Shown: piece after piece, positions 44 to 18,800 of the stretch
How positions within the stretch are numbered: position 1 is the first letter of the stretch
Layout: every line of letters begins with the position of its first letter
Assembly: GCA_965240325.2 (NCBI GenBank)
Contig: OZ251222.1
Span: 4,960,001-5,024,000 of the forward strand
DNA from: Rebecca billardiae RCC1528
Taxonomy: Eukaryota > Protista > Haptophyta
DNA length: 64,000 bases
Direction of reading: 5' to 3'
Program-made: the position numbers and the translations under genes
Notes under the pieces: model-generated
The model's database searches: none
What the model was told of the DNA's origin: nothing
What the model saw: only the letters and a program-made list of their open reading frames with translations

Positions 44-2678
44 CACAGTGCCGGAAAACTGCTCAGGGTGACGTTTTAAGTTGTCCGCACCACTAGTCGA
101 ATCATCGGACAATTCTGAAGCGGTGCGCCTAAATTCGGCGCACCATAGGCGCGTCGAATCGTGGCACAGACCTTGGTAGCAGGCCACACCTGAGCGCGCT
201 GCGCGCGCCGACGCGCGCTCGGCGCGGGCAAAAAATCATGCGCCGTTGGCATTACGCAGCCCCGCGCAGCGCTGTGCTCGAGCTCGGCGGCGGCGAAAGC
301 GGGCGGGCGCACACGGCGGTGCCCGTGCGCGCTGCTCCGAGCGCAGCTGCGGCCACCCCGGCGGCATAACGCCGGTCGAGGGCACGAAAACCGATTTTTC
401 GGGAAAATGCAGAGCAGCGGCGCCCGAGCGCGCCCGAGCTCGTCGCAGCACAGTCTCCTGGTGGCTGCGCCCCGTGAAGCCACGCCACGCGGGGCGCTGG
501 CGTGCGCGTGGCCTGCGCCCACCGTGCGCTGCCCGATCATGGCCGTCGACCGCTCCGAGCGCCTCACCACGCGTGCTCGAGCCCACCGATACTGACGCCC
601 GAGCACGGTGCCGGCAGCGCTCGCAGGTGGGCGTCGGAGAAAACACGCCGGCCGAACGAGCTTGAAGCGTCCGCCGCGATGCCAACGGCAGCGGACGACG
701 TGCGCGCCACCTCGGCGCCAGTCGCCCAGCCCTTGCGCGGCGGTGCGGGCTCGCTCGTTCGCCGCCATCAGCTGCGCGCGCGCAGCCCGATCACTGCCCG
801 CTGGTTCTGTTGTCGAGCAGCTGCGGCCTGCCACGCGCACTGCCGGACATTGAGCCACAGCGCGAGCACGCGCCTCGTCTGGCACGCGCGAGCACTCAGC
901 ATCGTGCGTGGCCACCATGACGCGCCCATCTGCGCCAGCAGCGATGAGCACGCCGCCGTTCAGCTCGCATCGGGCTCGCTCGCGACGCAGCAACGCGCGG
1001 CCGTAGCGGCAGCAGCGGCGCCGTCGAGCACGCGCAGCAAACAAATATGCAGCGCGGGCGAGTCGACGGTCTGGAAAATGCGCGATCACGCCACAGCAGG
1101 CTGGCAGAGCCCGCCCGAGCTGCAGCATGCCGTAGGTGCTGCCCCAAGCTCTCGACTGCCCGTAAGCGGCGGCATGTGCGGCGGCGCCGGCGGCGGCCAT
1201 GCTGCCACGCCGTTGCGCGCCGCGGGGCGCCGTCGGCACCTCTGTGGTGAAGCGCACAGAGCTCGAGCCCACGGGGGCTGGCGACCGTCAAACCGACACC
1301 CCATGACGCGGGGCTGCGTGCGCCAGCTGCGCGCACTCCGTGGGCCCACCTAGCCCGCTCGAGCAGCTCGCCTTGGGTGCGCGCAGCGGCTCGAGCACAC
1401 TGGTATGGGACGCCTGCCTGCGGTGCCGCCGAGCACATGCGGCCGACGGTCACTCAGCACGGGCGACTCGACGGCGGCGAGCAGGCGCGACGGCCTCGCC
1501 GCGCCGCGGAAAAGCCTGCCCGGGCTGCAGCACGCCGTAGGAGCAGCCCAGCGCCCTCCTCCGCCCTCCAGCTTCGGCGCGCGCAGCAGGCCCGGCGGCG
1601 GCCATGCTGGCGTGCCCAAGCATGAAGATGGGCGCGGCCGGCCGCGCCGTCGCAAAGCGCGCAGAACTCGAGCTCGGGGGGGCGGACGGCCGCCAAACTG
1701 GCGCGGCAGGACGTGGCACTGCGTGCGCCAGCTACGCGCACCCGCTGCGCCCGCGTGGCCCGTGCGAGCGCCGCGCCTCGAGCACACGCAGCTGCTCGAC
1801 ACAGCCACGGCAGTGTGGCTTGTGCGCGTGCACGTGATCAGTCTCAGCTCTGAGGCGCGCGCTCAGGAGGGCTGCGGCCGGGCCGAGCGCGATCTGCGCG
1901 GACGGTACAGCCTGGCGGCTCATGCCAGCCAGCCCAAAGCCCGCTCCGCCATCCGCGTCATGGCGCTCCAGCCTCTCGCGTGCTGCGCTGCAGCCGCGCT
2001 CGGCAAACGGACGTCGCCCAGCCCGCCTTGCACGCGGCTGAGCAGTGGCAGCCAGGCGAAGCGTCGTCGCGGGCGAGGCTGCGCTGGGTGATGCGGCTCG
2101 GGTCGGTGGGCAAGTCGCACCCCGCCGTCGGTCGCCTCCACGCCTCAGGCTCGCTCGAGGTCAAAGACAACTGCGCGGCGCGGCGTTTGCGCGGGCGGGC
2201 CGCGGGCGTGGCGGGGTGTACGCGTGCAATGTCACAGCCTCCCACACAATTTCAGGAGGGTGAGACGCACCGCCAGCGGCACCCGCACACAATCCCACCC
2301 TGCGCGAGCCACCTGCCGTGTCGACTGAAGCATCAGGCTCGGGCGCAACCGCGGGCGGTGCATGCAAGAAGCTCGCGAAACGCACCGCGCGCGCCGTGAG
2401 GGCGAAAGGAGAGCACCCGTCAGGGTGGCGAGGAACTTGCCCAGCGCCACGCGGAAGACGACCCCAGCCCGCGTCGACGCATAGTCGGGCCCGCGAGCAG
2501 CCTCGTCGGTCTTCGCCGAGTAGATCGCGCCGCGAGCCGAGGCACCGCTCGTTTGAGGCTCCGTCCGCCGCGAAGTCGCGGCTTCCACCCGAGTTCCACT
2601 GTCCGGCCGAGACCGGATTCGCTGACTCGAGCTGCGGACCGTCCGAAGCGTCACGGAAAATTCCAATCCTGCACTGTG
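44..2678. mobile_element. Non-autonomous DNA transposon, copy 1 (CACAGTG termini, 2-bp TSD CA)
   Basis: Starts CACAGTGCCGGA (44) and ends TCCTGCACTGTG (2678). Flanked by CA (42-43) and CA (2679-2680). A full-length inverted second copy lies at 3787-6420. Confidence 0.85.
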
Positions 2679-3786
2679 CATGTACACTTTGGTACATAAA
2701 TGGTACACTTTGGTACATTTCATGAGTGTACCAACGTGTACCAACCATGTACCAGTTTGCACACAAAAGTGTACCAAGTGTACCAACTCCTCCCTGATAA
2801 TGTACCAACTGCTCCCCAAAGTGTACCAACTTGTCCCAGGGTGTACCAAAAAATGTACCAACTCGTCCTGAAAATGTACCAATAAGTGTACCAAATTTCC
2901 GCGGAATGTACCAACTTGGTCCAGGGTGTACCAACAGTGTACCAACTCGTCCTGAAAATGTACCAAGTGTACCAAATTTCCGCTGAATGTACCAACTCGG
3001 CCCAGCAGGGTGTACCACAAGTGTACCAACTCCGGCACGAGTGTACCATCTGGCATCTACTGAACCAGCCGTCCGGGAAGGTCAAGGTGCGCCCGTCCAT
3101 CCATCCATGGCTCTGATGCTCGTCGTGGGGGCGCTCGTCTTCGACCGCCACGAACATCGCTGCGGCGAGTGGTTGCTGATCCCCTTCCACACGATGACGC
3201 ACGCTCTGCTCGCGTTTTCTTCCGCCCGCCCGCTAGCTGTGGCACCGCTACCGCCACGCAGCGTTGCAGCTCTGCTGCCAATTACAAGCGCCGTCTCGAT
3301 GGGTACGCGCCTGATGGTGCTGCTTACGCTGGCTACGCCGAGTGCGCGTCGTGGCTGCTAGAACACGCGCGCTGGGAGGCCCATCGTCATTTGCGGATCA
3401 TCGTGGACAAACTGTGTGAGGATGTACCAGGGGCAGGGATTCTGGGTGTACCAGGTACACCCAGGAAAGTGTACCAGCCGTCTGAATCGCCGACGATGGT
3501 ACACTATATTGGTACATTCATGAAAAGTTGGTACATTGATGGTACATTGGGGGACGGTTGGTACACATGGTATGGTACATTTGGTACATCGTTATTGGGA
3601 CACATTGGTACATTCTTCGGACGAGTTGGTACATTTGGGAGGAGTTGGTACATCAGGTAATGTACCGGCCAACATGTGCTATGTGGATGTACCAAAGTGT
3701 ACCATGGTACACCCACTGACATTTGGTACATATTGTCAGGATGCGTTGGTACACTTTGGTACACTATTGGTACACCATTGGTACAC
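2679..3786. repeat. Degenerate TGTACCA/TGGTACA motif array (host of the insertions; continues at 1-43, 6421-6454 and 12693-12755)
   Basis: Roughly 55-60 GTAC-cored motifs by hand count across all segments. They are mostly TGTACCA in 2726-3050 and mostly TGGTACA in 3495-3786, with a unique core at about 3050-3420. A higher-order repeat of about 85 bp lies in 2840-3015. Confidence 0.9.
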
Positions 3787-6420
3787 CACAGTGCCGGATT
3801 GGAATTTTCCGTGACGCTTCGGACGGTCCGCTACTCCGTCAGCGAATCCCGTCTCGGCCGGACAGTGGAAGCTCGCCGCGGAAGCGGGCGACTTTGGCGG
3901 ACGGAGGGACAAACGAGCGGGCTGCCTCGCTCGCGGCGCGACCTACTCCGCGAAGACCGACGAGGCTGCTCGCGGACCCGACTATGCGTCGACGCGGGCT
4001 GGGGTCGTCTTCCGCGTGGCGCTGGGCAAGTTCCTCGCCGCCCTGACGGGTGCTCTCCTTTCGCCCTCACGGCGCGCGCGGTGCGAGCGCGCCGCCGCCC
4101 GCATGCGCCGCGCGCGTTTGCGCCCGAGCCTGATGCCTCAGCAGACGTGGCGGGTGGCTCGCGCGGGGTGGGATTGGGCGCTGTTGCCGCTGGCGGTGCG
4201 TCTCACCCTCCTGAATTGCCATGGGAGGCTGTGAATTGCCAAGTGTACACCCCGCCACGCCCGCGGCGCGCTCGCGAACGCTCCGCGCCGCGCAGTTATC
4301 TTCGACCTCGAGCGAGCCTGGCGCGTGGAGGCGACCGACGGCGGGGTGCGACTTGCCCACCGACCCGAGCCGCATCACCCAGCGCAGCCTCGCCCGCGAC
4401 GACGCTTCGCCTGGCTGCCACTGCTCAGCCGCGTGCAAGGCGGGCTGGGCGACGTCTTTGCCGAGCGCGGCTGCAGCGCAGCACGCGAGAGGCTGGAGCG
4501 CCATGACGCGGATGGCGGAGCGGGCTTTGGGCTGGCTGGCATGAGCCGCCAGGCTGTACCGTCCGCGCAGATCGCGCTCGGCCCGGCCGCAGCCCTCCTG
4601 AGCGCGCGCCTCAGAGCTGAGACTGATCACGTGCACGCGCACAAGCCACACTGCCGTGGCTGTGTCGAGCAGCTGCGTGTGCTCGAGGCGCGGCGCTCGC
4701 ACGGGCCACGCGGGCGCAGCGGGTGCGCGCAGCTGGCGCACGCATTGCCACGTCCTGCCGCGCCAGTTTGGCGGCCGTCCGCCCCCCCGAGCTCGAGTTC
4801 TGCGCGCTTTGCGACGGCGCGGCCGGCCGCGCCCGTCTTCATGCTTGGGCACGCCAGCATGGCCGCCGCCGGGCCTGCTGCGCGCGCCGAAGCTGGAGGG
4901 CGGAGGAGGGCGCTGGGCTGCTCCTACGGCGTGCTGCAGCCCGGGCAGGCTTTTCCGCGGCGCGGCGAGGCCGTCGCGCCTGCTCGCCGCCGTCGAGTCG
5001 CCCGTGCTGAGTGACCGTCGGCCGCATGTGCTCGGCGGCACCGCAGGCAGGCGTCCCATACCAGTGTGCTCGAGCCGCTGCGCGCACCCAAGGCGAGCTG
5101 CTCGAGCGGGCTAGGTGGGCCCACGGAGTGCGCGCAGCTGGCGCACGCAGCCCCGCGTCATGGGGTGTCGGTTTGACGGTCGCCAGCCCCCGTGGGCTCG
5201 AGCGCTGTGCGCTTCACCGCGGAGGTGCCGGCGGCGCCCCGCGGCGCGCAACGGCGGGGCAGCATGGCCGCCGCCGGCGCCGCCGCACATGCAGCCGCTT
5301 ACGGGCAGTCGAGAGCTTGGGGCAGCACCTACGGCATGCTGCAGCTCGGGCGGGCTCTGCCAGCCTGCTGTGGCGTGATCGCGCGTTTTCCAGACCGTCG
5401 ACTCGCCCGCGCTGCATATTTGTTTGCCGCGCGTGCTCGACGGCGCTGCTGCTGCCGCTACGCCCGCGCGTTGCTGCGTCGCGAGCGAGCCCGATGCGAG
5501 CTGAACGGCGGCGTGCTAATCGCTGCTGGCGCAGATGGGCGCGTCATGGTGGCCACGCACGATGCTGAGTGCTCGCGCGTGCCAGACGAGGCGCGTGCTC
5601 GCGCTGTGGCTCAATGTCCGGCAGTGCGCGTGGCAGGCCGCAGCTGCTCGACAACAGAACCAGCGGGCAGTGATCGGGCTGCGCGCGCGCAGCTGATGGC
5701 GGCGAACGAGCGAGCCCGCACCGCCGCGCAAGGGCTGGGCGACTGGCGCCGAGGTGGCGCGCACGTCGTCCGCTGCCGTTGGCATCGCGGCGGACGCTTC
5801 AAGCTCGTTCGGCCGGCGTGTTTTCTCCGACGCCCACCTGCGAGCGCTGCCGGCACCGTGCTCGGGCGTCAGTATCGGCGGGCTCGAGCACGCGTGGTGA
5901 GGCGCTCGGAGCGGTTGACGGCCATGGTCGGGCAGCGCACGGTGGGCGCAGGCCACGCGCACGCCAGCGCCCCGCGTGGCGTGGCTTCACGGGGCGCAGC
6001 CACCAGGAGACTGTGCTGCGACGAGCTCGGGCGCGCTCGGGCGCTGCTGCTCTGCATTTTCCCGAAAAATCGGTTTTCGTGCCCTCGACCGGCGGCATGC
6101 CGCCGTGGTGGCCGCAGCTGCGCTCGGAGCAGCGCGCAAGGGCACCGCCGTGTGCGCCCGCCCGCTTTCGCCGCCGCCGAGCTCGAGCACAGCGCTGCGC
6201 GGGGCTGCGTAATGCCAACGGCGCATGATTTTTTGCCCGCGCCGAGCGCGCGTCGGCGCGCGCAGCGCGCTCAGGCGTGGCCTGCTACCAAGGTCTGTGC
6301 CACGATTCGACGCGCCTATGGTGCGCCGAATTTAGGCGCACCGCTTCAGAATTGTCCGATGATTCGACTAGTGGTGCGGACAACTTAAAACGTCACCCTG
6401 AGCCGTTTTCCGGCACTGTG
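3787..6420. mobile_element. Non-autonomous DNA transposon, copy 2, inverted relative to copy 1 (2-bp TSD AC)
   Basis: Starts CACAGTGCCGGATTGG (3787) and ends TTTTCCGGCACTGTG (6420). Flanked by AC (3785-3786) and AC (6421-6422). Removing it restores TTGGTACACTATTGGTACAC, which matches the neighbouring repeat unit. Confidence 0.88.
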
Positions 6421-6614
6421 ACTATTGGTACACTTGGTACATCTCTAACATGTACACAGCAACGACTTCTCTTTTTAAAGCGGCCGTTAGCGTGTCCATC
6501 GGCCGGATTATTTTACGGAAAATTACTATGCGCTGCGCGCGCGCGCCCAGCGGGCGGCGCGCGCGCGCGACTAGTCCCCCCTGCATGCCCTAACCGTCAG
6601 CTGCCTGATTCCCG

Positions 6615-9600
6615 CTACCCAGCCCCGCTGCCGTCGCGCGCGACATCCGCGCCGTCGCTCACCGTCGCCGAGGCCGAGCGCGCCGCCGCCCTCAATTTGC
6701 TCTTGAGTGCCGACAAGTCCTCCTCCGGAAGCCCAGCCTCCTCGCGCACGAGCTTGCGCGCCGCGATGTACTCGTCGACCAGGTCGTGCGCGCCGGCCTT
6801 CGCCTTGCGCTGCCATTCGCGCTGCCGCTTGCCCTCCTTCTTCAGCCAGAGCCGCCGCACCTTGTCGCCGAACTCCTCCTCCGCCCACGTCGCAAGCGAC
6901 ACGCGGCGCAGGAGCTGCGCGGCCGTCGAGATGTGCGGCTGCACCGTCGACTTCTTCCCCTCGGCATACTCGCGGACGAACGAGTCGAGCGACTTGCGCG
7001 CGTTCACGAGCGGCATCGCCCGCTTGGTCACCTGCACGAAGTGCTCCTGCACCTGCTCGTCCGCGAGCTGCACGAGGTGGCCCCACCGCCTGATCAGCAG
7101 AGGCAAGACGAACCGCGCGATCGTCTTGTACTGCGAGGTGACCGGCTTGAGGACGAACAGGTCGAGCGCCTCGACCCACGCCGTCGCGGCTGCCTCAACC
7201 TCGTCCGCACGCTTCGCGCGGCCATCGTCATCGTCCGTGTAGCCGCGCGAGGAGACGAGGTCGTGCAGCTGCCACGTGAGCATGAGCAGGCGGCAGAAGA
7301 GTGCCATGCGCGGCATGTCCGCGATCTCGGCCTTCAACTGCGCCTCGTCGTCAAAGCCGATCTCGTCCATCATCTCGCGCTCCTCCTCGTCCTGCATGTC
7401 CGAGATGCGCGCGTCCTCGTCGCCGCTGTCCGCCGCGCCCGCGCTGCTCGCGCCGTCGAGATCCGCGTCGATCTTCCACACGACCTGCACCAACGCCCAG
7501 AAGACCGCGTGCGTGCGCAGCAGCGAGATGCCGTCGCCGCGGAGGTCGGGCACGCCGATCTCGTTGGTGCGCGTGCGCCGCTTGGGCACTCGCACAGGCA
7601 CGCCCGCGTTCTTGAACAGGACGATCAGGTCGTACTTGGTGAGCGGCGCGTCGCGGCCGTACAGCTCGTCCACCTCCCTCCACAGCGCCGACAGCACCGG
7701 CTTGAAAGTGTCGTGCTTGAAGTGCATGATGCCGGGGAAGTAGTTGACGTGCTCGAGCTCCAGCTGCGGTAGCAGCCACTGGTTCTCGTGCAGCTTCTGG
7801 TCGACGATGCGCTCGGCGTCCTTCGAGTCGTCGGCGAGAAGGCGGCGGCGCTTGGTCATCTCGGCGTCGCACTCGCCCTGGTCGGCAGGCGTGACCTTGC
7901 ACGCAGGGCACGTCACGCCCGGGTCCGCGTGGCACAGCGCGCGCGCGCGCTTGTACGTGCGCAGCCGCCACTGAGGCGAGCCGCCGTCCGCGCCCGCCTC
8001 CTTGACCGCCCACACGTTGAAGCGGAGCGGCGAGACGTTGTGCGAGCCCTGGCCGGCGAGGCTGGCAAGGTTGACATAATCGCCGGTGTACGTGATGATG
8101 GCCTTCTGCTCCTCCGCGTAGTCGGCCGCCTCGCCGCCGCCGCCAAAACCGCCGCCGGCCGCGCCGCCCGCCGCGCCGGCAGCGCCGGCCGCGCCGGCCG
8201 CGCCGGCCGCGCCGCCGGCCGCGGCGGCCGCGGCGGCCGCGGCGGCCGCGCCGCCGGCCGTGCCCGCGCTCGGGTTGCCAGCCGCGCTGCTCGCCGCGCC
8301 GCCGGCCGCGCCACCGGCCGCGCGGACGCCAGCGCCGGCGGTGCCGCCAGCCACGCCGCTGCCGCTGCCGCTGCCGCCCGCGCCGCCCGCGCCGCCCGCG
8401 CCGCCGCCAGCGCCCGCGCCCGCGTTACCAGCCGCGCCGCCGGCAGCGCCGCCGGCCGCGCGGACGCCAGCGCCGGCGGTGCCGCCAGCCACGCCGCTGC
8501 CGCTGCCGCCCGCGCCGCCCGCGCCGCCCGTGCCGCCGGCCGTGCCGCCGGCCGTGCCGCCGGCCGCGCCGCCGGCCGCGCCGCGGGCCTCGCCGCGGCC
8601 CGCGCCGCCGGCCGCGCCGGCTGTGACGGCCGCGGCCGCGCCGCCGGCCGCGCCGGCCACACGTGCGGTGGCGGCAGCAGGCGGCGTCGGTCGCGGCGGA
8701 AGCAGGCCGCTCCGGATCACGTCATTGATCGCGTCGGCGTGCGCACTCCATAACTCGGACATGTCCGAGTCCGGCCGCTCCGAGATGGCGATCGCCTCTG
8801 ACGACGCGAGCGCGCCGTAGTTGACGCCCCAGCCGTTGCGCACGATGGCGATCGTGGCCGTGCGCGAGTGAGCCGTGTTGCCCGCGTCCGCCGAGAGGAG
8901 GAGGACGTGCGGCTGCCCGCGCGGGCGCGCGGACTTGCCGTTGCGCTCCGAGCGATCCAGCACGGCGTGCACGGCCTGCGCCCACGGCCGCGCCGCCGAC
9001 TCGCTGCCGATCATGAGCACGCCCGCGCCCGCGTGCTCGCGATCGCGCTGCGCGACCTCTCGAGAGCCAGCCGCCGGCGGCGGGATCGGGTGGCGGATCG
9101 GCTCGCGGCCGAAGCCGCCGCGGAAGACGGTGCGAGCCGAGTGCTCGCCCGTCACCGGGTGGATCTCCTTCCCCACCCACTCGCGCCACGTGTCGAACTG
9201 CGCGTCCGTGACGTTCTTCGAGACGAGGTAGCCGGCGACGTCGTGGTGCGTCTGATGAGATTGAATCTCGCGCACAACGCCCACTGCGCCGCGGCGCTGC
9301 TGGAGGTAGGCGTGCCTCGCCCACGGCTTGCGCGAGCCGTCGTCTGCGCCCTCGAGCATCTCGTGCAGCACGAGGTCCATCACGTCGTCGGGCGTGCCAC
9401 GCAGGATGTGCTCGATATGGTCCGCCTCCCCCCGCCTGCGCTTGCGGCACGCGTTGCTCGAGACCGAGAGAGATGGGCGCTGAGCGCGCTGCCGATGAGC
9501 GCCGTCCAGCCCGTTCAGCTCGGCGAGGTGCTCGAACTTGCCGGCGGCTCGGTCGGCGCGCTTGCGCGCGGCGTCCTTGTCGCGCTTGAGCTCGACAAGC

Positions 9601-11342
9601 TGCGACTGCTGCTCGTCGCAGAGCGACTGGGCGTGCGCGCACTGCTGCTCGAGCAGCTGCTGCGCGTGCAGCGCAGCCGCGAGCTCGTGCTCGACGCCGC
9701 TCAGCGCGTCAGCGGCGATGTGCTCGGTCGCGGTGAGGCGGCGCTCCAACTCGAGGGCCCGATCGCGCTGCGCGTCGGCGGCGCGCTGCGCAGCTGCGGC
9801 CCGCGCGTTCGCCTCTTCGAGATCGCGCCGAAGCTTCGCCTGCGCCTGCTCCGCCTCGGCGTCGTGGCGGGTGCGCGCATCCGCGCTGTGCCCGGCGCGG
9901 TACCCGGCGAGCACAGCGCGCCTCTCCGCGGCAGCAGCGGCGGCGCGCGCGGCGGCGATCCGGTCGAGGGCCTCGCGCTCGATGTTCTCGCACTCGAGCT
10001 TGACGGCGGCGATCACCACGTCGAGAACCGGCTCGAGATCGACGGCGGCCGAGTTGACGATGTCCTCGCGCTGCCGCACCGCGTCGTCGCGCTCGCGCTC
10101 GAGCTCGCCGTTGAAGTGCTCGAGCTCGGTCACACGTGTGCGCAGCGAGGTGAGCTCGAGCTCGGAAGGGACGCTGCGCGTGCTGTGCGAGCGCCGCAAC
10201 TGCTGCTCGAGCTCGGCCACGTGCTGCAGCTCGGCCATGCGCCTTCGACCCCGTGCTGTCTGCTCGTCCGCCTCTGCCTCGGGCGTCGGCGCCACGCTGC
10301 CAGCCGAGCGCGTGAGAGGCCGCTGGCGGGTGGGCGCGGCCGAGAGCAGCACGGCAGGCGGCGGCGACATGAAGGCGGGCGAGGCGACGGCAGGTGACCT
10401 CGGCGGCAGCAGCTCTTCCGCCGACCCACCGACGAACGGCTGCGCCGCCGCGCCAGCGAGGAGGAGTGGCGGCGCGGGCTGGCGGGAGGCGCTGCGCGTG
10501 ACCGCGGGCGACGGCGCAGCGGCAGCAGGAAAGCTCAAGGCGGAGGAGGCGTTGGTAGTGGCGGGCGAGAAGACGAGGTGGTCGGCGTGAGCGGGAAGAG
10601 ACGAGAAGCGGGCAGCGACGACGGCGGGAGACAAATCGGCGGCGGCGGCGGCGGCTGATGCCGCCGCCTCGCCGCCATCAGCTCGAAGGAGAGCGAGCGC
10701 GCGCGCGGTCGGTGGACGGGCGGCATCATGCGGCGAGGACAGCGGCTGCGGCTGCGGCCGCGGCCGCGGCCGCGGCCGCGGCTGCGGCGGCTGCACGAGC
10801 GGCGGAGGCAGGTGCGGAGGCGCCGACGGCAGCTGCGGCGGTGGCGGAAGCGACGGCAGCGGCGGCGGCCCCAACGGAGGCAGCGGCTGGGTGTCCGCGA
10901 CCGCGTAGGGCATCACGGCGGCGGACGATGGATCGGATGGCGCGTCGGCGCAGAGGCCGGGCGTGAGACCGAGGACTGGAACATGCGAGAGAGGCTGAGA
11001 ATGAGAATGCAGATGGGCATGCGTGGGATCGAGGGCAGAGAGATCGAGGGGGGGATGCGGCGCGACCGCGCCGTCACCAGCTGGCGCGCGACGCCATCGG
11101 GCGCTGCTCGCTGCTCGGCGAGTGGCGGTCAGCTGCTCGCGCTGCGCGCGGCGCGCTTTCCAGTCCGCGCGCTTGCGCCGTGAGACGTCGGACTCGGGCG
11201 GCGCCGCCGGTGCCGCCGCGGCGGGCGCCGCGGCAGGCGCTGCCGGCGGCGCGCCCGTGAGCTCCGACGGGCCCTTCGTCACAGACGGCGTGCGCCGCCA
11301 GCCCCGCCTCCGCCGCGGCGCATCGAGACGCCCTGCGCGCAC
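6615..11342 (-). CDS. RAG1/Transib-like DDE transposase (5' end uncertain, probably spliced)
   Basis: Motifs are collinear with the RAG1 core as recalled. RPSLSVSSNACRKRR ~ NBD RPRQHLLSLTRRAQKHR. VTDAQFDTWREWV ~ LSCSQYHKMYRTV. LLLSADAG ~ KESCDG (D at 8886-8888). PDSD ~ DESD. YTGDYVNLASLAGQ ~ GYDEKLVREVEG (D at 8079-8081). PGIMHFK ~ DALHCD. LRGDGISLL ~ MNGNFARKL. LADEQVQEHF...NARKS ~ ASEGNES...NARQS (E at 7044-7046). An N-terminal coiled coil precedes these. Confidence 0.75.
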   Translation of the reverse strand: MRAGRLDAPRRRRGWRRTPSVTKGPSELTGAPPAAPAAAPAAAAPAAPPESDVSRRKRADWKARRAQREQLTATRRAASSARWRRAPAGDGAVAPHPPLDLSALDPTHAHLHSHSQPLSHVPVLGLTPGLCADAPSDPSSAAVMPYAVADTQPLPPLGPPPLPSLPPPPQLPSAPPHLPPPLVQPPQPRPRPRPRPQPQPLSSPHDAARPPTARALALLRADGGEAAASAAAAAADLSPAVVAARFSSLPAHADHLVFSPATTNASSALSFPAAAAPSPAVTRSASRQPAPPLLLAGAAAQPFVGGSAEELLPPRSPAVASPAFMSPPPAVLLSAAPTRQRPLTRSAGSVAPTPEAEADEQTARGRRRMAELQHVAELEQQLRRSHSTRSVPSELELTSLRTRVTELEHFNGELERERDDAVRQREDIVNSAAVDLEPVLDVVIAAVKLECENIEREALDRIAAARAAAAAAERRAVLAGYRAGHSADARTRHDAEAEQAQAKLRRDLEEANARAAAAQRAADAQRDRALELERRLTATEHIAADALSGVEHELAAALHAQQLLEQQCAHAQSLCDEQQSQLVELKRDKDAARKRADRAAGKFEHLAELNGLDGAHRQRAQRPSLSVSSNACRKRRRGEADHIEHILRGTPDDVMDLVLHEMLEGADDGSRKPWARHAYLQQRRGAVGVVREIQSHQTHHDVAGYLVSKNVTDAQFDTWREWVGKEIHPVTGEHSARTVFRGGFGREPIRHPIPPPAAGSREVAQRDREHAGAGVLMIGSESAARPWAQAVHAVLDRSERNGKSARPRGQPHVLLLSADAGNTAHSRTATIAIVRNGWGVNYGALASSEAIAISERPDSDMSELWSAHADAINDVIRSGLLPPRPTPPAAATARVAGAAGGAAAAVTAGAAGGAGRGEARGAAGGAAGGTAGGTAGGTGGAGGAGGSGSGVAGGTAGAGVRAAGGAAGGAAGNAGAGAGGGAGGAGGAGGSGSGSGVAGGTAGAGVRAAGGAAGGAASSAAGNPSAGTAGGAAAAAAAAAAAGGAAGAAGAAGAAGAAGGAAGGGFGGGGEAADYAEEQKAIITYTGDYVNLASLAGQGSHNVSPLRFNVWAVKEAGADGGSPQWRLRTYKRARALCHADPGVTCPACKVTPADQGECDAEMTKRRRLLADDSKDAERIVDQKLHENQWLLPQLELEHVNYFPGIMHFKHDTFKPVLSALWREVDELYGRDAPLTKYDLIVLFKNAGVPVRVPKRRTRTNEIGVPDLRGDGISLLRTHAVFWALVQVVWKIDADLDGASSAGAADSGDEDARISDMQDEEEREMMDEIGFDDEAQLKAEIADMPRMALFCRLLMLTWQLHDLVSSRGYTDDDDGRAKRADEVEAAATAWVEALDLFVLKPVTSQYKTIARFVLPLLIRRWGHLVQLADEQVQEHFVQVTKRAMPLVNARKSLDSFVREYAEGKKSTVQPHISTAAQLLRRVSLATWAEEEFGDKVRRLWLKKEGKRQREWQRKAKAGAHDLVDEYIAARKLVREEAGLPEEDLSALKSKLRAAARSASATVSDGADVARDGSGAG

Positions 11343-12136
11343 ACCTTGAGCAGCTCGCCGCTCACGTCAGCGCGCCCCTTCTCCTTCTTGAAGCGCCATG
11401 GCTGCATCAGCGCGTAGCGCTCGGCGTCGACGCTCACGCCGCCCTGCGCGTCCTGTGGCGCGTGCAGGCCGCCCTGCGCGTTGAGCGAGATCACGCCCAC
11501 GCGCACGTGCGCGAACTGCTGGTACGCGCCGTCCGGATCGAGCCGATGCATCTCGGTGTGCTCGATCGAGAGCGAGTGCACCGTGTTGATCGCCGAGAGG
11601 TGCCGGTCCGTGCGCGCGCCGCCGAGCGCGTTCGCCCGCAGCGGCTTCGGGACGCGGCGCATGCCCAGGTTGAGCCACGTCGAGATGCGCTCGGGCTGGT
11701 ACGAGCTCACGGTGCGCCGCGTGCGGTCCTTCTCTCGCGTCTCGTGCACGACGCCCTGGTCGTCGAGCGAGGTGAACATCGGCGAGTAGAGGGCGTCACG
11801 CGGGAACAGCGCCAGCTTGGCCTTGCGCAGCAGGTTGCCCTTCTTCCGGCTGCCCTTGATGGCGACGAAGTTGTTGACCTTGCGCTTGACCTCCGCCAGG
11901 TAGTTCTCGTTCGGCATGATCGAGTGGTCCACCTCGCTCGCCGCCTCGCGCGCGCGCAGCATGAGCGTCTCGTGCTCAGCCGCCTTCTCCGCGGCCGCCG
12001 CGGCCATGCGCCGCCGCACAGATGCGGCAGAGACCTTGCGCCCGATGCCGTAGCCGCCCTTCCGCTGCAGCTTGACCTTCTTCGGCTTCGCGCAGGAACG
12101 CTTGCCCTTGCCCACGGTAAGCACAGCCGTCGTCAT
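11279..12136 (-). CDS. Transposon-borne basic orphan ORF or first exon of the transposase gene
   Basis: ATG at 12136, protein-like composition with a Lys/Arg-rich N-terminus, inside the TIRs on the same strand as the transposase. Likely splice donor AAG|GTGTGC at 11345/11344. Confidence 0.6.
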   Translation of the reverse strand: MTTAVLTVGKGKRSCAKPKKVKLQRKGGYGIGRKVSAASVRRRMAAAAAEKAAEHETLMLRAREAASEVDHSIMPNENYLAEVKRKVNNFVAIKGSRKKGNLLRKAKLALFPRDALYSPMFTSLDDQGVVHETREKDRTRRTVSSYQPERISTWLNLGMRRVPKPLRANALGGARTDRHLSAINTVHSLSIEHTEMHRLDPDGAYQQFAHVRVGVISLNAQGGLHAPQDAQGGVSVDAERYALMQPWRFKKEKGRADVSGELLKVCAQGVSMRRGGGGAGGARRL

Positions 12137-13178
12137 TGCTGCGCGCGGCGAGCGCGGTCCCGCGCGGCCGCCGCCGGGCGCAGCCGCAGCAAGTTAGTCT
12201 GATGCAAATTCCCGGTCACCCATGCAAAAGTAAGCGTTCCCGCTGAGCATGTGCGTGGATCACGAGTAACCCGCCGCCTGAATACAAACTCCGCGCCCCT
12301 CCATACACTTCCTGCATCCCCGCGCGCGGCGGCGTGCAGGCGGGCGCAGATTCGCACCGTGTTACGAACAGACCTAGCAAAGTAGATCGGCGTGGCGGGT
12401 CGGGACGCGGAGCGGGTGCGGGGCAGGTGGGGGATAGGTTGGGGAACACCCGCGATTAGAGCACCGGTGGCGCAGCGGCGACGTGGACGCCGCCACACGC
12501 GCACGCACGGCGCACGCGCGCACCGGGACTTTCAACTTCGCGTCGGAGCTCTGGACGACCGTCGGTTGGTCCGAGCGGCGCGAGGAGGCTCTCGGGATTG
12601 TGGCCGGACGCCCGGGTTGAGCCGTTAACGGCCGAAAATCAATTTGTTGGAGTTTCCTTAACGGCCGCTTTAAAAAAGAAATCGTTGCTGTGTACCAATC
12701 GTGTACCAATTATGTACCAAAGTGTACCATGGTACATCCGCTTAGCTCGGTACACTCCTCATTCTGAGCTCGGTTTGGTGACACCTCCCAATATCGTGAT
12801 GCGTAGTAATCGTCGCGTATACTGCTACGCGTATACGTAACTGCTTATATCAGTCGTGCTGGCGGTATCATGGCGCCCGCCCCCGCGCCCGCCCCCTATA
12901 GCAGTATAGCGCGCAGCTATTACTAGGGAGCGCAGTCGTACTTTGACGACGATCGGGCGCACTGCGCAGCCGCGACGAATCATCAGGAGATCGACCTGCG
13001 TCGTCCTACCTGTGTCGTCAATATACATCGTCGATCATATAGAATGAATCGTATATATAATAATAAGCAGCTATATATATCACTCGTCCCGGCGCGCTTC
13101 ACATTCTATATTCATCATCAGCGCAATCATCACGCGCATCGTCGGCGCGCCGTCCCGTAGTCCGACGCGTCCGGCAGG

Positions 13179-15317
13179 CTATTGCCGCCGCTGCTGCTGC
13201 TGCTGTTGATGGCCAGCGGCAAAGCTGCGTGTGGTGCTGACGACGCCGTCAACGCGCGCCGCACCGCTGCTGCGTGCTGGCACCGCGCCACTGGCATCGC
13301 CCGCCGGGCGCGCGAGGACGCCGACGCTCGCCCCGTCGTCAGCGGCCTCAGCATCGTCATCGCTGGCGGCGGAGTGCGCGGAGCTGCCAGCGCCACCGTC
13401 GGCACCGGCACGGCTGCCGCCGCCCTCTGTCCACGTCGCCGCAGTGCTTGACGCGGCGTGCGCCGCGCGCGCCTCGGTCTCGGCGGCGCGTGCGCTCGAG
13501 CCCGCCGCAGCAGCCATGCGCAGCGGCCACGGGCAGCGGCGCTCCCCCTGTGCCTCCCGTGCCGCGCGCAGGCCGCGCTGCTCGGGCGGCGCGGCGGCGG
13601 CATCGTCGCGCCGTGGCTCGCCCGCCGTGCTGGACGCGCCGCTGCCGCCGCTGCCGCCCGCGCTGCCGCTCGCCATCGAGTCGGTGGAGTCGCTGTGCGA
13701 CAGCGGCGTCGCGCTGCGCCGCTCCTCGCGCTTGGCGCGCGACTCGGGCTGCTGCTGCTGCTGCTGCTGCTGCCGCGGCGGCGGCGGCGGCGGCGGCTGC
13801 CGCTGCGTCTCGGCGCGGCGCGCGCGCAGCCACCACGGCGCGCGGCGCGCGCGCGGCGCGCGCATGTACGTGCTCGCGAGCGCGAGCGGCGCCAGCGCCA
13901 GCGCCTGCAGCGTCGCGGTCGCGTAGAAGTTGGTGCCGATCCCGCTGCGCGCGATGATCAGCCCGCCCACCGTCGCGCTGCCGGAGAAGGTCGCCTGGTT
14001 GACCGAGTCGACCGCGGCGTACCGCCCGCGCTGCGCGGGCGGGACGAGGTCGTGGATGATCGACTTGGTGAGGCCGGCGGGCGCGGTGACGAGCGCGGTG
14101 CGCACGAGGTACAGCGCGACGACCAGCGCCTTCGACGCCCCCGCCTGGTACGCGCCCACCATGCCGAAGCACGCGGCGCAGCCGAGCAGCACGCACACGC
14201 CCGTCGCGCCGATGCGGCCGGCGCGCGGCGCGGCGCGCTCGGCGGCCGAGCTGGCGAGCGCGATGAGCACGAGCGCGCCCACGCCGATCGCGTTCACCGC
14301 GACCGGCGAGAGCGCCAGCTCCTCCAGCAGGAAGATCGGGAAGAAGCGCGTGCTCAGCCCCGAGGCGAGCGCGTACGCCACGTCGTAGCCGAGCACAAGC
14401 GCAGGCACGAGCAGCACGCGCCCACCGCAGCACAGCGAGCTGGTCGCGCGCGGAGGGGGAGGGGAGGCGGGCGGCGGGCCGAGCGCGGAGGACGAGGCGA
14501 GCGCGGAAAGCTCGGCCGAGGAGCTCGCACCGTCGAGCCCGCAGCCCGCGCCCGCCTCCGCGTCGTCGGCCGCATCCGGCGCTGGCGGCGGCGCCGCCGC
14601 CGCCTCCGCCTCGGCCTCGGCAGCGCCCTCGGCCGCGGCGACGTCGAGGAGCGGCTCGGCGAGCCCCGCGGCGCGGAGCGCGGGCGTAGCGCCCATCTCC
14701 GCCGTCGGCCCCACCCGCACGTCGCGCAGCGCGAAGAGCAGCGTGTTGGGCAGCAGCGTGCTGCCGATGCCAGCGTACAGCGTGAGCTGACACGTGCGCA
14801 GCGCCCACGAGTTGCCGCGCAGCGCGAAGATGGCGATGGTGAGCAGCGGGCCGCACGCGTTGGCGAGCTGGTTGACCTGGTTCTTCCGCGTGAACCACAG
14901 CGCGCGCTCGCCGTCCGCCACCGAGTCCGCGTACAGCGCGTCCACGTTCGGGTTGGCGACCGCCCAGTAGCAGCCCCAGAAGCCCATCGAGAGCGAGAGC
15001 GAGAGGAAGTGGTCGCGGTGCACGGCGAAGGCGGCGAGCGCGGCGCCGGCGTACCCGACGAGCGCGGCGACGCGGAGCATCCCGTCCCGCCGCCACCGGT
15101 CGCCGAGCCAGCCGCACAGCGGCGCGAGGAGGAGCTGCGCGATCCCGCGCACGCCGGTGATCACGCCGACCGCCTCCGCCGAGTCGGTCACGAGGTAGAC
15201 GTACGCGGCGAACACGTCGCCCGCCCAGATGGAGCGCGAGGCGGAGGAGAGCCCCGTGTACAGCAGCACGAGGATGCGGTTCGTCCGCGCGCGCGCTGCC
15301 GCCCGCGAGCTCGGCAT
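13179..15317 (-). CDS. Major facilitator superfamily transporter
   Basis: Two bundles of hydrophobic helices, MFS motif A-like GWLGDRWRR, and DLVPPAQRGR in the second half. Central loop and C-terminal tail are low complexity. Confidence 0.85.
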   Translation of the reverse strand: MPSSRAAARARTNRILVLLYTGLSSASRSIWAGDVFAAYVYLVTDSAEAVGVITGVRGIAQLLLAPLCGWLGDRWRRDGMLRVAALVGYAGAALAAFAVHRDHFLSLSLSMGFWGCYWAVANPNVDALYADSVADGERALWFTRKNQVNQLANACGPLLTIAIFALRGNSWALRTCQLTLYAGIGSTLLPNTLLFALRDVRVGPTAEMGATPALRAAGLAEPLLDVAAAEGAAEAEAEAAAAPPPAPDAADDAEAGAGCGLDGASSSAELSALASSSALGPPPASPPPPRATSSLCCGGRVLLVPALVLGYDVAYALASGLSTRFFPIFLLEELALSPVAVNAIGVGALVLIALASSAAERAAPRAGRIGATGVCVLLGCAACFGMVGAYQAGASKALVVALYLVRTALVTAPAGLTKSIIHDLVPPAQRGRYAAVDSVNQATFSGSATVGGLIIARSGIGTNFYATATLQALALAPLALASTYMRAPRARRAPWWLRARRAETQRQPPPPPPPRQQQQQQQQPESRAKREERRSATPLSHSDSTDSMASGSAGGSGGSGASSTAGEPRRDDAAAAPPEQRGLRAAREAQGERRCPWPLRMAAAAGSSARAAETEARAAHAASSTAATWTEGGGSRAGADGGAGSSAHSAASDDDAEAADDGASVGVLARPAGDASGAVPARSSGAARVDGVVSTTRSFAAGHQQQQQQRRQ

Positions 15318-15889: not shown

Positions 15890-18800
15890 ATGGGCGACGA
15901 CGTCGCGCGCGTGTGGTCCATCGACCTGGCGCGCGTGGCCAGCCTGCTGCAGTGCAGCGAGGCCGACCTCGTCCAGTCGCTCGTGCGCGAGGGCGCGCCC
16001 GTCGAGGCGCAGCTGCACACGCCGCCGCCGCCGCCCGCGGACGCGGCCGGCGCGGCGGCGGCCGCCGCCGCCGCGGCGGCGGGCCCGAGCTGGGAGTCGC
16101 CGCTGGACTACGCGCCGCCGCCGAGCACGCTCCGCGTGCGCCGCGCGCTCATCTCGTGCGTCTCCCGCCGCCCCGCCCTCGGCGGCGCGCTCGTGCCCAA
16201 GGAGCTGCAGCGCGTGGGCGCGCACCCGCTGCTCGGGCTGCTGCTGCGCCAGCTGGCGGACGCGGGCGTGCGCCGCGTGGACGTGGTGCTCGGCGGGCCG
16301 ACGGCGGCGGCGCTGCGCGAGGCGCTGCCCCTCCTCCCCGCCGCCGCGCACCTCGACCTGCACCTCGTCGACCTCGGCGACACCTACAGCGGCGGGCACG
16401 GCGCGTCGCTCGCGCGCGCGCGCGCGCTGTTTTCGCCGTGGGAGCGCTTCCTGCTGTGCGCGTCGGACCACCTGTTCGAGCCCGCGCTGGTGCGGCGGAT
16501 GGCGGAGGCGGAGCTGCCGCCGGGCGTGCACGCCAACGTGCTCGTCGAGGCCGACCCCGCCGTGTACGCGCCGCGCGAGCTCTCGAGCACCGCGGTGCGC
16601 GTGCTGGCCGCGCGCACACACGCGGAGAGCGGCGCCGGCCCCGCGCGCGTCCTCGCGATCGGGCGCGAGCTCGTGCCGACGGCGGGGTCGGAGCTGGAGT
16701 GCGGGCTGTTCCTCGTCGACACGGAGATCTTCCCCGCGCTCGAGGACGCCGCGCGCCGCCGGCTGAGCGGCGAGGGCGGGTACACGACGCTGGCGGCGGC
16801 GCTGCAGCTGCTCGCGCGCCGCGAGGCGGTGCTGTGCACGCGCGCGGCGGGCGGGCAGTGGCTGGCGCTGGAGACGGTGGCGCAGCTGCGGCGCGGGCGG
16901 GAGAGCGGCGCGGTGCGCAGCGCGCTGCGCCTCGCGCCGCCGCACCCCGCCGCCGCCACGCCGCGCGCCACGCCCGAGCGCGCCGCCGCGGCCGCGGCCA
17001 GCAGTCCGAGTGCAGAGGGGGCGGAGGGGGCGGAGGGGGCGGAGGGGGCGGAGGGGGCGGAGGGGGCGGAGGGGGCGGGGCGGCTGCCGCCCTCCGCACC
17101 GGCGGCCGTGCCGCGCGTGCCCTCCGCACCGGCCGCGTCGGCGGCGGGCAGCGGCGGCGGCGGCTCGTCGAGCGCGTCGCTCCGCACGGCGTGCAGCGCG
17201 GCCGCGCACCCCCAGCCCCAGCCCCAGCCCCAGCCCCAGCCCCAGCCCGCGCTCATGCTCGGCCTCGCCCTCGACCCGCAGCCGCAGCCGCAGCCGCAGC
17301 CGCAGCCCGTGGGCGGTGGCGGTGTGGGCGGTGGCGGTGTGGGCGGCGCGGAGGGGGCGGAGGTACAGCCGCTGGCGCTGGCGCTGGCACCGCAGCCGCA
17401 GCACGAGCAGCATCCCGCGGGGTGGGACGCGGGCGGCGCGGCCGCGGCGGTGCACGCGGCGCACGTGCCGCCCCTGCAGCAGCCAAGCGCGCACGCGCTG
17501 CGCGGCGTGCTGCTCCAAGTCGAGCCGCACGCACAGGCGCAGGCGGAGCAAGAGGCGCGCGCGGCTGCCGCCGAGCGCGAGGGCGCGCCGCTCGAGGCGG
17601 CGCTCGAGGCGGGCGGCGCGGCGGGCGCGCGCGCGGCCGCGCCGCGCGCGCACGGCGTGCCGCGCTGGGTGCGCACCCTCGCCGCCCGCGTCGAGCGCGC
17701 GGCCCCGCCCCTGCTGCTGCCGCGCGAGGGGCGCCGCGCGGACTCGGCCGAGTACTCGCGTGAGTACGAGTACTCACGTGAGTACGCGGTCGCCTCGCTC
17801 ACGCCGCTCAGGCCGTCGACGGCCGCACCGGCCGGCGGCGGCGGCGGCGGCGCGCCGCCCGGCGCGCCGCCCGCGCCCGGCCGCGCGCCGGAGGGCGAGG
17901 GCGCGCAGGGCGCGCCCGGCGGCGCCGGCGGCGCGCGCGCGCGCGGCGCGCCGCCCGCCCGGCGCGCCATGTCCATGTGCGCGTCGACAGCTGCGCCGCA
18001 CGCGTTTGCGCTCGCGCTGCCGCCGCCCCCCGGCGCGCTCGGCGCCACCGAGCCTCGCGGCAGCGGCCGCGGCAGCAGCGCGCTCGGCGCCTCGCCCGTG
18101 CAGGCGCGCCGCGCCTCGCTGTTCGGCCGCCCGCCAGAGCCGGACGGCCGCGCCGCGCTGCTCGGCGGGGCGTTCGGCGGCGCGGACGCGGGCTCGGACG
18201 GCGGCGGCGGCGGCGCGCCCGACGGCGGGCACGGCGCCCCCAGGCCGAGCGCGTACCTCGTCGAGTTGCCGCACGGGCACGCGCACGGACACGCGCGGCA
18301 GCGCGGCGGCGGCGGCGCGGAGGGCGGCGGCGCGGAGGGCGGCTGCGGCCAGCTGCTGCTCGCGGCCTTCGAGCCGGTGGCGCAGCAGCCGGCGGGCGTG
18401 GGCGCGGGCGGCGGCAGCGGCGGGCTGCAGCCGCTGCACGCGCAGCGCCAGCACCAGCACCCACCCTCCGCCTCCGCCTCCGCCTCCGCCTCCGCCTCCG
18501 CCTCCTCTGCGCACGCCGGCGCGGCCGGCGCGCCGTGCGCGGGCGGGGGCGCGCGTGCCGCGGGGTGCGGCTGGGCGTGCGGCGTGGAGGACGCGCTGGC
18601 GGCCCCGCTGCTCGGGCTGCCGCTGCCGCAGCTCGCGTCCGACATCACCGCGCTCTCACTCAGCGCAGCGCACATACGCGCGCCCCCGCCCCCGCCCCCG
18701 CCCCGCGGCGCGGAGGGCGGCGGCGCGCGCGCGCGGTGGCGCGGCGCGTGGGCGCGGCGGCTCGGCCGCGCGCACCGCGCGCCGCCGCCGCCCGAGCCCA

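Follow-up and report, generated by a model that had tools for sequence, protein, structure and literature searches.

We analysed a 64,000-bp stretch of the genome of the haptophyte Rebecca billardiae RCC1528 (contig OZ251222.1, positions 4,960,001 to 5,024,000, forward strand; here called the window), which harbours an intact-looking DNA transposon bounded by terminal inverted repeats (TIRs) at window positions 6455-12692 (6,238 bp). The GC content of the window is 72.2%, for comparison with 73.25% in Diacronema lutheri (PMC8379373). A first-pass annotation of the same DNA, made without database searches, had described an intact-looking transposon with TIRs of about 35 bp, TA on both flanks and a long open frame for a RAG1-like enzyme. 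The transposon, its ends and its open frame are all borne out: TIRs of 35 and 34 nt lie at 6455-6489 and 12659-12692, TA adjoins both of them, and a frame of 1575 codons runs between them on the minus strand. The features of the element are as follows.

6453..6454, no strand: left TA copy of the target site duplication (TSD); the reconstructed empty site is a TGTACCAA unit.
6455..6489, plus strand: left TIR, CACAGCAACGACTTCTCTTTTTAAAGCGGCCGTTA.
6480..6489, plus strand: inner conserved TIR block GCGGCCGTTA (core written GCGGCCGTT), positions 26-35 from the tip, with a mirror copy at 12659-12668.
6615..11342, minus strand: main open frame of 1575 codons with a Pro/Ala-rich region, a coiled coil and a DDE core; the first ATG is codon 144 (10911-10913).
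7044..7058, minus strand: candidate catalytic Glu region DEQVQE (E1429/E1433), at a helix start after the insertion domain; family consensus NEQxQE.
7899..7910, minus strand: C(2)C motif CPAC (C1145/C1148); CPxC is conserved in the family.
8079..8081, minus strand: candidate second catalytic Asp D1088 in TYTGDYVNL, just past beta4, from the family alignment and the structure model.
8127..8687, minus strand: Gly/Ala-rich low-complexity insert of 187 codons between beta3/alpha1 and beta4, predicted to be disordered.
8886..8888, minus strand: candidate first catalytic Asp D819 in LLLSADAG, on beta1 of the model; S-x-D-A-G is conserved in the family.
9543..10238, minus strand: coiled-coil region, about codons 369-600; homologs likewise have an N-terminal coiled coil.
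11279..12136, minus strand: upstream open reading frame (ORF) of 285 aa in another frame than the main ORF, a conserved N-terminal module and probably exon 1 of the transposase.
12659..12692, minus strand: right TIR; its reverse complement is CACAGCAACGATTTCTTTTTTAAAGCGGCCGTTA.
12693..12694, no strand: right TA copy of the TSD.

The two TIRs share the pattern CACAGCAACGA[C/T]TTCT(C)TTTTTAAAGCGGCCGTTA and differ by two mismatches and one indel. The left-end 35-mer occurs once in the window, with 0 occurrences expected from shuffles. When the element is excised together with one TA, the sequence ...ACATGTACCAATCG is restored, a perfect unit of the surrounding TGTACCAA array. As GTAC is palindromic, ends of the form ACAG..CTGT with a 4-bp GTAC duplication would give the identical empty site for this element alone. 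Two further insertions close by, B1 and B2, rule this reading out, as they permit only a 2-bp duplication with CAC..GTG ends. A longer TIR without duplication, or a duplication of zero bp, was rejected as well, since neither restores the array unit.

44..2678, plus strand: B1, a related non-autonomous element of 2.6 kb with CA on both flanks; both ends share CACAGTGCCGG.
3787..6420, minus strand: B2, an inverted copy of B1 with AC on both flanks, 96.5% identical overall and 99% over 1964 nt.

All ends of B1 and B2 start with CACAGTGCCGG, and further inward the two ends of each copy diverge; their termini are the exact heptamer CACAGTG of the recombination signal sequence (RSS) of V(D)J recombination. 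The wider flanks of B1 and B2 are unlike each other, so that they represent independent insertions. Repeats of 2 bp flank each of the three insertions in the window (TA in the focal element, CA in B1, AC in B2), for which chance would account with a probability of about 1/4096. The 5-bp flanks are unequal in all three cases and the match is limited to 2 bp. This agreement of three out of three supports a 2-bp TSD, and the duplications show an integration stagger of 2 bp. This is the integration geometry that the first-pass annotation had proposed; the 5-bp duplication of the Transib/RAG1 lineage is seen at none of the three sites.

A relative of the focal element outside the window helps to define the ends. 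It is a complete element of 5,957 bp in a metagenome (L002; JGI, Joint Genome Institute, metagenome 3300017818, contig Ga0181565_10011449, 444-6400), with the same gene order as the focal element, GC-rich in AT-rich flanks, and bounded by perfect 33-bp TIRs that start with CACTGCTTTGCC (CACTG). In an alignment of the focal ends, both kinds of B1/B2 ends and the ends of L002, two parts are conserved: a CAC[A/T]G tip and an inner block, G[CT]G[AG]C(C)G[TC]T, at about 25-34 nt from the tip (68-77 and 3811-3819 in B1/B2, 468-476 in L002). This block is found in TIRs of three families, from two organisms, and in each it lies about 25 nt inward of the CAC tip, a fixed distance. Some 17 bp separate the heptamer-sized tip from the inner block, with the same spacing at both ends. 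Judged from these alignments, the end architecture is bipartite and RSS-like but symmetric, and recognition of the TIR at two points, by the catalytic core and by a separate DNA-binding module, might fit such ends.

To collect the family to which the transposase belongs, its C-terminal 505 residues were compared exhaustively, with HMMER, to 1.84 billion representative proteins. We obtained 31 proteins at E<=1e-3 (14 of them at E<=1e-10), mostly fragments. Two of them belong to Pavlovales sp. CCMP2436, and the others come from transcripts of MMETSP, from marine metagenomes and from one further NCBI assembly. Homolog searches by word index, whether from one sequence or from a profile, added nothing to this set. 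A metagenome scan with the window protein gave no match, and one with the homolog P0035 returned only L002 again and one truncated contig.

Conserved in the family are the motifs S-x-D-A-G, T-G-D-x-x-N, H-x6-C-P-x-C, H-E/F-N, M-H-x-x-H, N-E-Q-x-Q-E and a K...N-x-R tail. Around CPAC, the conserved H1138 precedes the motif and H1186 (in LHENQ) and H1207/H1210 (in IMHFKH) follow it; the His residues of M-H-x-x-H (H1207, H1210) have a spacing of 2, and the second is not invariant. The zinc site of RAG1 is made of C727/C730 and H937/H942. The family has a Cys pair and no His pair upstream of Glu, and other His residues (H1138, H1186 and H1207) are conserved. In the family alignment the Gly/Ala insert of the window protein occupies the place of a loop of the RNase H domain; in most relatives this loop is rich in Cys, and the homolog P0024 lacks it.

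The upstream ORF appears to encode a further part of the same protein. It can be aligned with the N-termini (about 250 residues) of the Pavlovales proteins P0025 and P0029 and with the upstream gene of L002 (hhalign probability 80%, E 1.4e-5, 154 columns). In the Pavlovales proteins this module is in the same gene model as the transposase, and in L002 it is a separate upstream gene; it has no Pfam match and no informative atlas match. An interval of 71 nt with GT..AG borders (11344-11274, minus strand) would fuse the upstream ORF and the main frame into a protein of 1,816 residues; the ORF is probably joined to the main frame through a short intron of this kind. A canonical intron, GTAAGC...CAG, is found in L002 at about 4791-4952, after which the frame continues with the conserved EFEHALRKMTSKS...NEQVQE. 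Elements of this family do therefore carry introns. No second transposase copy was found in the window, nor was a RAG2-like (kelch propeller) neighbour gene; the only other notable ORF is the one at 11279-12136, which has no Pfam match.

AlphaFold2 models were built for the homolog P0040 (646 aa, from the family alignment) and for residues 600-1575 of the window protein. The P0040 model has a mean predicted local distance difference test (pLDDT) of 74 and a predicted template modelling score of 0.72. The window model has a pLDDT of 64 overall and of 85-95 in the catalytic core, while the Gly/Ala insert and the first ~160 residues are disordered or unreliable. Both models place the first Asp on beta1, the second just past beta4 and the Glu at a helix start after a long insertion; this insertion, from D1088 to Glu, measures about 340 residues and is predicted to be mostly helical, which is the large insertion expected of the CMCT clade (named below).

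With VIA-align, the P0040 model matched RAG1 with Z 15.8, BbRAGL with 14.4 and HzTransib with 13.2, followed by P element (8.6) and Hermes (6.5). The window protein gave Z 17.4 with RAG1 (414-446 residues aligned, RAG1 ~461-1008), 15.2 with BbRAGL and 14.2 with HzTransib, and then ISCth4 (7.8) and Hermes (6.7). A scan of 48,161 chains that was independent of Foldseek returned the same order for P0040 (RAG1 15.1, BbRAGL 14.4, HzTransib 9.9, P element 8.4); a TorS sensor domain at Z 9.0 is a match of helical bundles only. Transposases other than RAG1, RAGL and HzTransib reached at most Z 8.6 to the models. The first-pass annotation had named AlphaFold with Foldseek as one way to check the likeness to RAG1, and in the Foldseek search against PDB the top 43 matches of P0040 were all RAG1/RAGL (E 1e-5 to ~3e-2), with nothing else below E 0.2. 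RAG1 was also the only matching family among the Swiss-Prot AlphaFold models. In language-model features the named clusters nearest to P0040 were those of RAG1_RNase_H (score 0.94, 171-178 shared), with a recognition value just under the reliability mark of the tool, and the C-terminal part of the window protein reached only 0.75.

From these models a RAG1/Transib-type fold of the transposase core is well supported. However, predicted models of Transposase_21/DUF4218/DUF4216 (the TnpD type of plant CACTA elements), Plavaka, DUF1280 and unnamed eukaryotic clusters match about equally, with template modelling (TM) scores of 0.4-0.66 by either side, 350-590 residues aligned and AlphaFold database E values down to 2e-9. 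As predicted, then, the fold is common to RAG1 and CMC-type enzymes and is not exclusive to RAG1. The RAG1-like enzyme of the first-pass annotation has to be read in this light: three independent searches of solved structures all rank RAG1 first, but the likeness does not single out RAG1 against CMC-type models. The motif order of the RAG1 core that had been read from the letters agrees with the predicted structure (D819, D1088, E1429/E1433; superposition on RAG1 ~461-1008), whereas sequence statistics give it no support, and its NBD-like and DDBD-like parts are not confirmed (model pLDDT <50 at ORF residues ~617-761).

These observations point to a group that has already been defined in the literature. 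The CMCT clade comprises EnSpm, Mirage, Chapaev, Transib/RAG1, Plavaka, ESTA and Lanisha, which are united by two motifs, C(2)C and H(3-4)H, by TSDs of 2-5 bp and by termini that are for the most part 5'-CA..TG-3' (Kojima 2025, PMC12730594). The CPAC of the focal protein, between the second Asp and Glu, is such a C(2)C motif. The focal termini, CACAG..CTGTG, and the 2-bp duplication lie within this range, and they lie equally within that of CMC proper (CAC termini, 2-4-bp TSD). We consider it likely that 6455-12692 is an autonomous cut-and-paste transposon of the CMCT clade and that it represents a deep lineage, orphan in sequence, known so far from haptophyte-type marine algae. What is new here is the lineage, which may be nearer to RAG1/Transib or nearer to CMC.

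Several findings weigh against this assignment. By sequence comparison the protein could not be tied to a single one of the CMCT families. The window protein has no Pfam match at E<=1, the RAG1_RNase_H, RAG1_ZnC2, RAG1_ZnH2 and RAG1_pre-RNase_H models included, and Pfam likewise finds no match in two upstream ORFs, 10 homologs and the 36 members of the alignment (the members at E<=10). Searches of PDB by phmmer and hmmsearch returned no RAG1, Transib or other match, even with E up to 10; the queries were the core, a profile of the family and two segments that contain motifs. Because such links are absent, CMCT membership rests on predicted structure and terminal features, and the models themselves were built on shallow alignments of 31-36 sequences. 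An H(3-4)H motif is not evident in the family alignment: MHxxH lies far upstream of Glu, and there is no His pair near Glu. The main ORF and the N-terminal module are in different frames, and inclusion of the module requires a splice or a frameshift. The flanks of L002 (..ATCATCA / ATCTGC..) show no clean 2-bp duplication; among the other elements, the 2-bp TSD of the first-pass annotation is seen in B1 (CA) and B2 (AC).

One alternative is that the element is a divergent member of CMC proper, of EnSpm/Mirage type, and that its likeness to RAG1 is the generic similarity within CMCT. A 2-bp TSD together with CAC... termini is typical of Mirage and animal EnSpm (PMC12730594; 10.64898/2026.08.26.747230), and in structure the family resembles the Transposase_21/DUF4218, Plavaka and DUF1280 models. 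With CMC (EnSpm/CACTA, Mirage, Chapaev) and Plavaka it has in common the CA(C)..(G)TG termini, a TSD in the range of 2-4 bp (for Mirage and PlavakaA, 2 bp), the C(2)C motif and predicted structures that match at TM 0.4-0.66. Yet the Pfam models Transposase_21, Plavaka, DUF1280 and DUF4218 match no member of the family, none of the 31 HMMER relatives that were scanned has a Pfam family, and the language-model features favour RAG1 families over Transposase_21. We regard ordinary CMC membership as possible, although rather unlikely.

Less easily held, and in our view unlikely, is a position of the family specifically within Transib/RAG1, or as its sister, with a shift of the stagger from 5 bp to 2 bp and a linking role between Transib/RAG and CMC. 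The best solved structures are RAG1/RAGL, with coverage from the dimerisation/pre-RNase H region through the C-terminal domain. The language-model features of P0040 are nearest to RAG1_RNase_H, B1/B2 have the exact RSS heptamer at their ends and the TIRs have two conserved parts. For the Transib lineage, elements that duplicate 3 bp or TA have been reported, in a study that also notes that RepeatMasker files Transib under CMC (2026 preprint, 10.64898/2026.08.26.747230). On the other side, models predicted for CMC-type enzymes match equally well or with more residues aligned, and the ranking in PDB cannot tell RAG1 from CMC, since its matches include no structure of a CMC transposase. Of the 36 family members none is matched by the Pfam RAG1 models with E allowed to reach 10, the language-model recognition stays below the reliability mark (with only 0.75 for the C-terminal part of the window protein), the ZnH2 His pair of RAG1 is absent and the element contains no RAG2-like gene.

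With RAG1 and RAGL (mouse and zebrafish RAG1, BbRAGL) the focal family shares a predicted fold that spans the dimerisation/pre-RNase H region, the RNase H domain, the helical insertion and the C-terminal domain (Z 15-17, ~370-446 residues), DDE residues on equivalent secondary-structure elements, C(2)C after the second Asp and termini that begin with CAC, which in B1/B2 extend to CACAGTG. It differs from them in having no detectable sequence similarity and no Pfam RAG1 domain, a TSD of 2 bp instead of 5 bp, no RAG2-like partner, no ZnH2-type His pair before Glu and a symmetric TIR spacing in place of the 12/23-type asymmetry. Like the focal element, HzTransib is a TIR transposon that relies on one protein, whose core is of RAG1 type (Z 13-14, 319-374 residues aligned), and it has a CAC-type heptamer and a second conserved TIR block. 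Transib is set apart by its canonical TSD of 5 bp and by the lack of detectable sequence similarity to the focal family, whose protein has, in addition, a long N-terminal module as well as a coiled coil. CMC and Plavaka differ in that none of their Pfam models matches.

Of the known groups ESTA is similar in another respect: it is a CMCT lineage whose likeness to RAG1 is seen by profile and structure methods only, and it has 2-bp duplications. It is found in rust fungi, where it duplicates TA and where the likeness to RAG1 was detected by HHpred; PlavakaA also makes 2-bp TSDs (PMC12730594). As described, ESTA is set apart by its TA specificity in rust fungi, compared with TA, CA and AC in the alga. 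A RAG-like element of an alga is known as well, AanRAGL of Aureococcus, with TIRs that start with CACACCCAAACCT, 5-bp TSDs and RAG1L and RAG2L genes (Tao et al. 2022, PMC9435367); identity of the focal element with AanRAGL was ruled out by the differing TIRs, TSD and gene content. Since ESTA, TA-duplicating Transib elements and the algal AanRAGL have already been published, the focal element is not a conceptual first and no unique "missing link", and the combination of a RAG1-like enzyme with 2-bp geometry, in which the first-pass annotation saw a possible undescribed link, is not without precedent.

That the element is an immobile relic or a host-domesticated gene is very improbable. In favour of such a reading, a Gly/Ala expansion of 187 codons takes the place of the Cys-rich loop in the RNase H domain, the N-terminal module and the main ORF differ in frame and the TIRs differ at 3 positions. 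On the other side, the element has kept both of its TIRs and the duplication, its frame of 1575 codons runs through without a break and has all family motifs, the identity of B1 and B2 (96.5-99%) indicates recent mobility of the sister family, run X1 (described below) contains further copies, and P0024 has no loop at the Gly/Ala site, which therefore tolerates variation.

Under the reading that we prefer, an autonomous CMCT transposon of a separate lineage, the element would encode one large transposase composed of the N-terminal module (probably joined through a short intron), a low-complexity linker, the coiled coil and an RNase H-like DDE core with D819, D1088 and E1429 or E1433 as candidate catalytic residues. 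The core would consist, as in RAG1/Transib, of a pre-RNase H region, a large helical insertion in which the C(2)C motif lies, and a C-terminal domain. A dimer might bind the bipartite TIRs with its catalytic core on the CACAG tip and another domain on G[CT]G[AG]CG[TC]T about 25 bp inside. The DDE enzyme would then nick at the CAC boundary, the element would be released, probably through hairpinned flanking DNA as in Transib/RAG, and its 3'-OH ends would be joined to target strands staggered by 2 bp. We infer the chemistry, with its hairpin step, from the predicted fold and by analogy with Transib/RAG; the roles in DNA binding, the intron and mobility at the present day are likewise inferred.

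It might even be that the family is the closest non-animal relative, as sister or stem, of Transib and RAG1 and is currently active, a proposal that we find doubtful. If the sister or stem position were true, the RAG-type architecture, the CACAGTG heptamer and a spaced second TIR block would already have been present in haptophyte-type algae, and the stagger of 2 versus 5 bp would have changed within this lineage. Apart from that proposal, the element extends the CMCT group to an algal lineage that is invisible to sequence-based annotation. It offers an apparently complete example (TIRs, duplications, N-terminal module, coiled coil and core) with recent non-autonomous derivatives beside it. 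The lineage could help to root the split between RAG1/Transib and CMC and to show which parts of the enzyme set a stagger of 2 or of 5 bp. An active element might possibly serve as a transposon tool for very GC-rich algae.

Evidence on copies and activity comes from the window and from the public run X1 (low-depth contigs, library type unknown). Some X1 contigs are identical to the ORF between 7300 and 11000, and others are diverged ORF copies near 7971-8133 and 8880-9000. One contig carries the same 34-bp TIR as 12659-12692 with a different flank (CTTATTCACC...) and diverged subterminal sequence. The TIR with another flank and the diverged ORF pieces indicate more than one copy or variant in the X1 sample. 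Coverage by X1 is absent at 11240-12618 and in the unique right flank, which in contig data proves nothing. Neither a joint nor an empty site was seen in this run. The identity of 96.5-99% between B1 and B2 points to recent mobility of the sister family. Taken with the intact TIRs, the duplication and the open frame of the focal element, recent activity is plausible as judged from sequence.

In its interior the B1/B2 element contains a 385-bp direct repeat (~70% identical) and an ORF of 398 codons without Pfam match; no internal sequence is common to B1/B2 and the focal element. All three CAC-ended insertions of the 64-kb window are hosted by the TGTACCAA array of about 1.2 kb. The TGTACCAA motif has 38 exact copies in the window, compared with 0.19 expected, and every copy adjoins the insertions described here. 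This clustering suggests a target preference or a tolerated landing zone. The array itself lies at 1-43, 2679-3786, 6421-6454 and 12693-12740, in both orientations around a unique core at ~3060-3420, and is foldback-like.

Around the homologous genes at the Pavlovales loci L001 and L004 we found no CAC-type TIR pair. At L001 (Pavlovales sp. CCMP2436, MU631495.1) palindromic short repeats, which resemble miniature inverted-repeat transposable elements and end in ACAGGGGATCGCGG..., form a cluster at 18260-19040 near the degenerate homolog P0029. To the right of the focal element the window contains an ORF of 712 codons with a major facilitator superfamily domain (13179-15317, minus strand; PF07690, E 2.6e-12), at a distance of ~490 bp from the element's right end.

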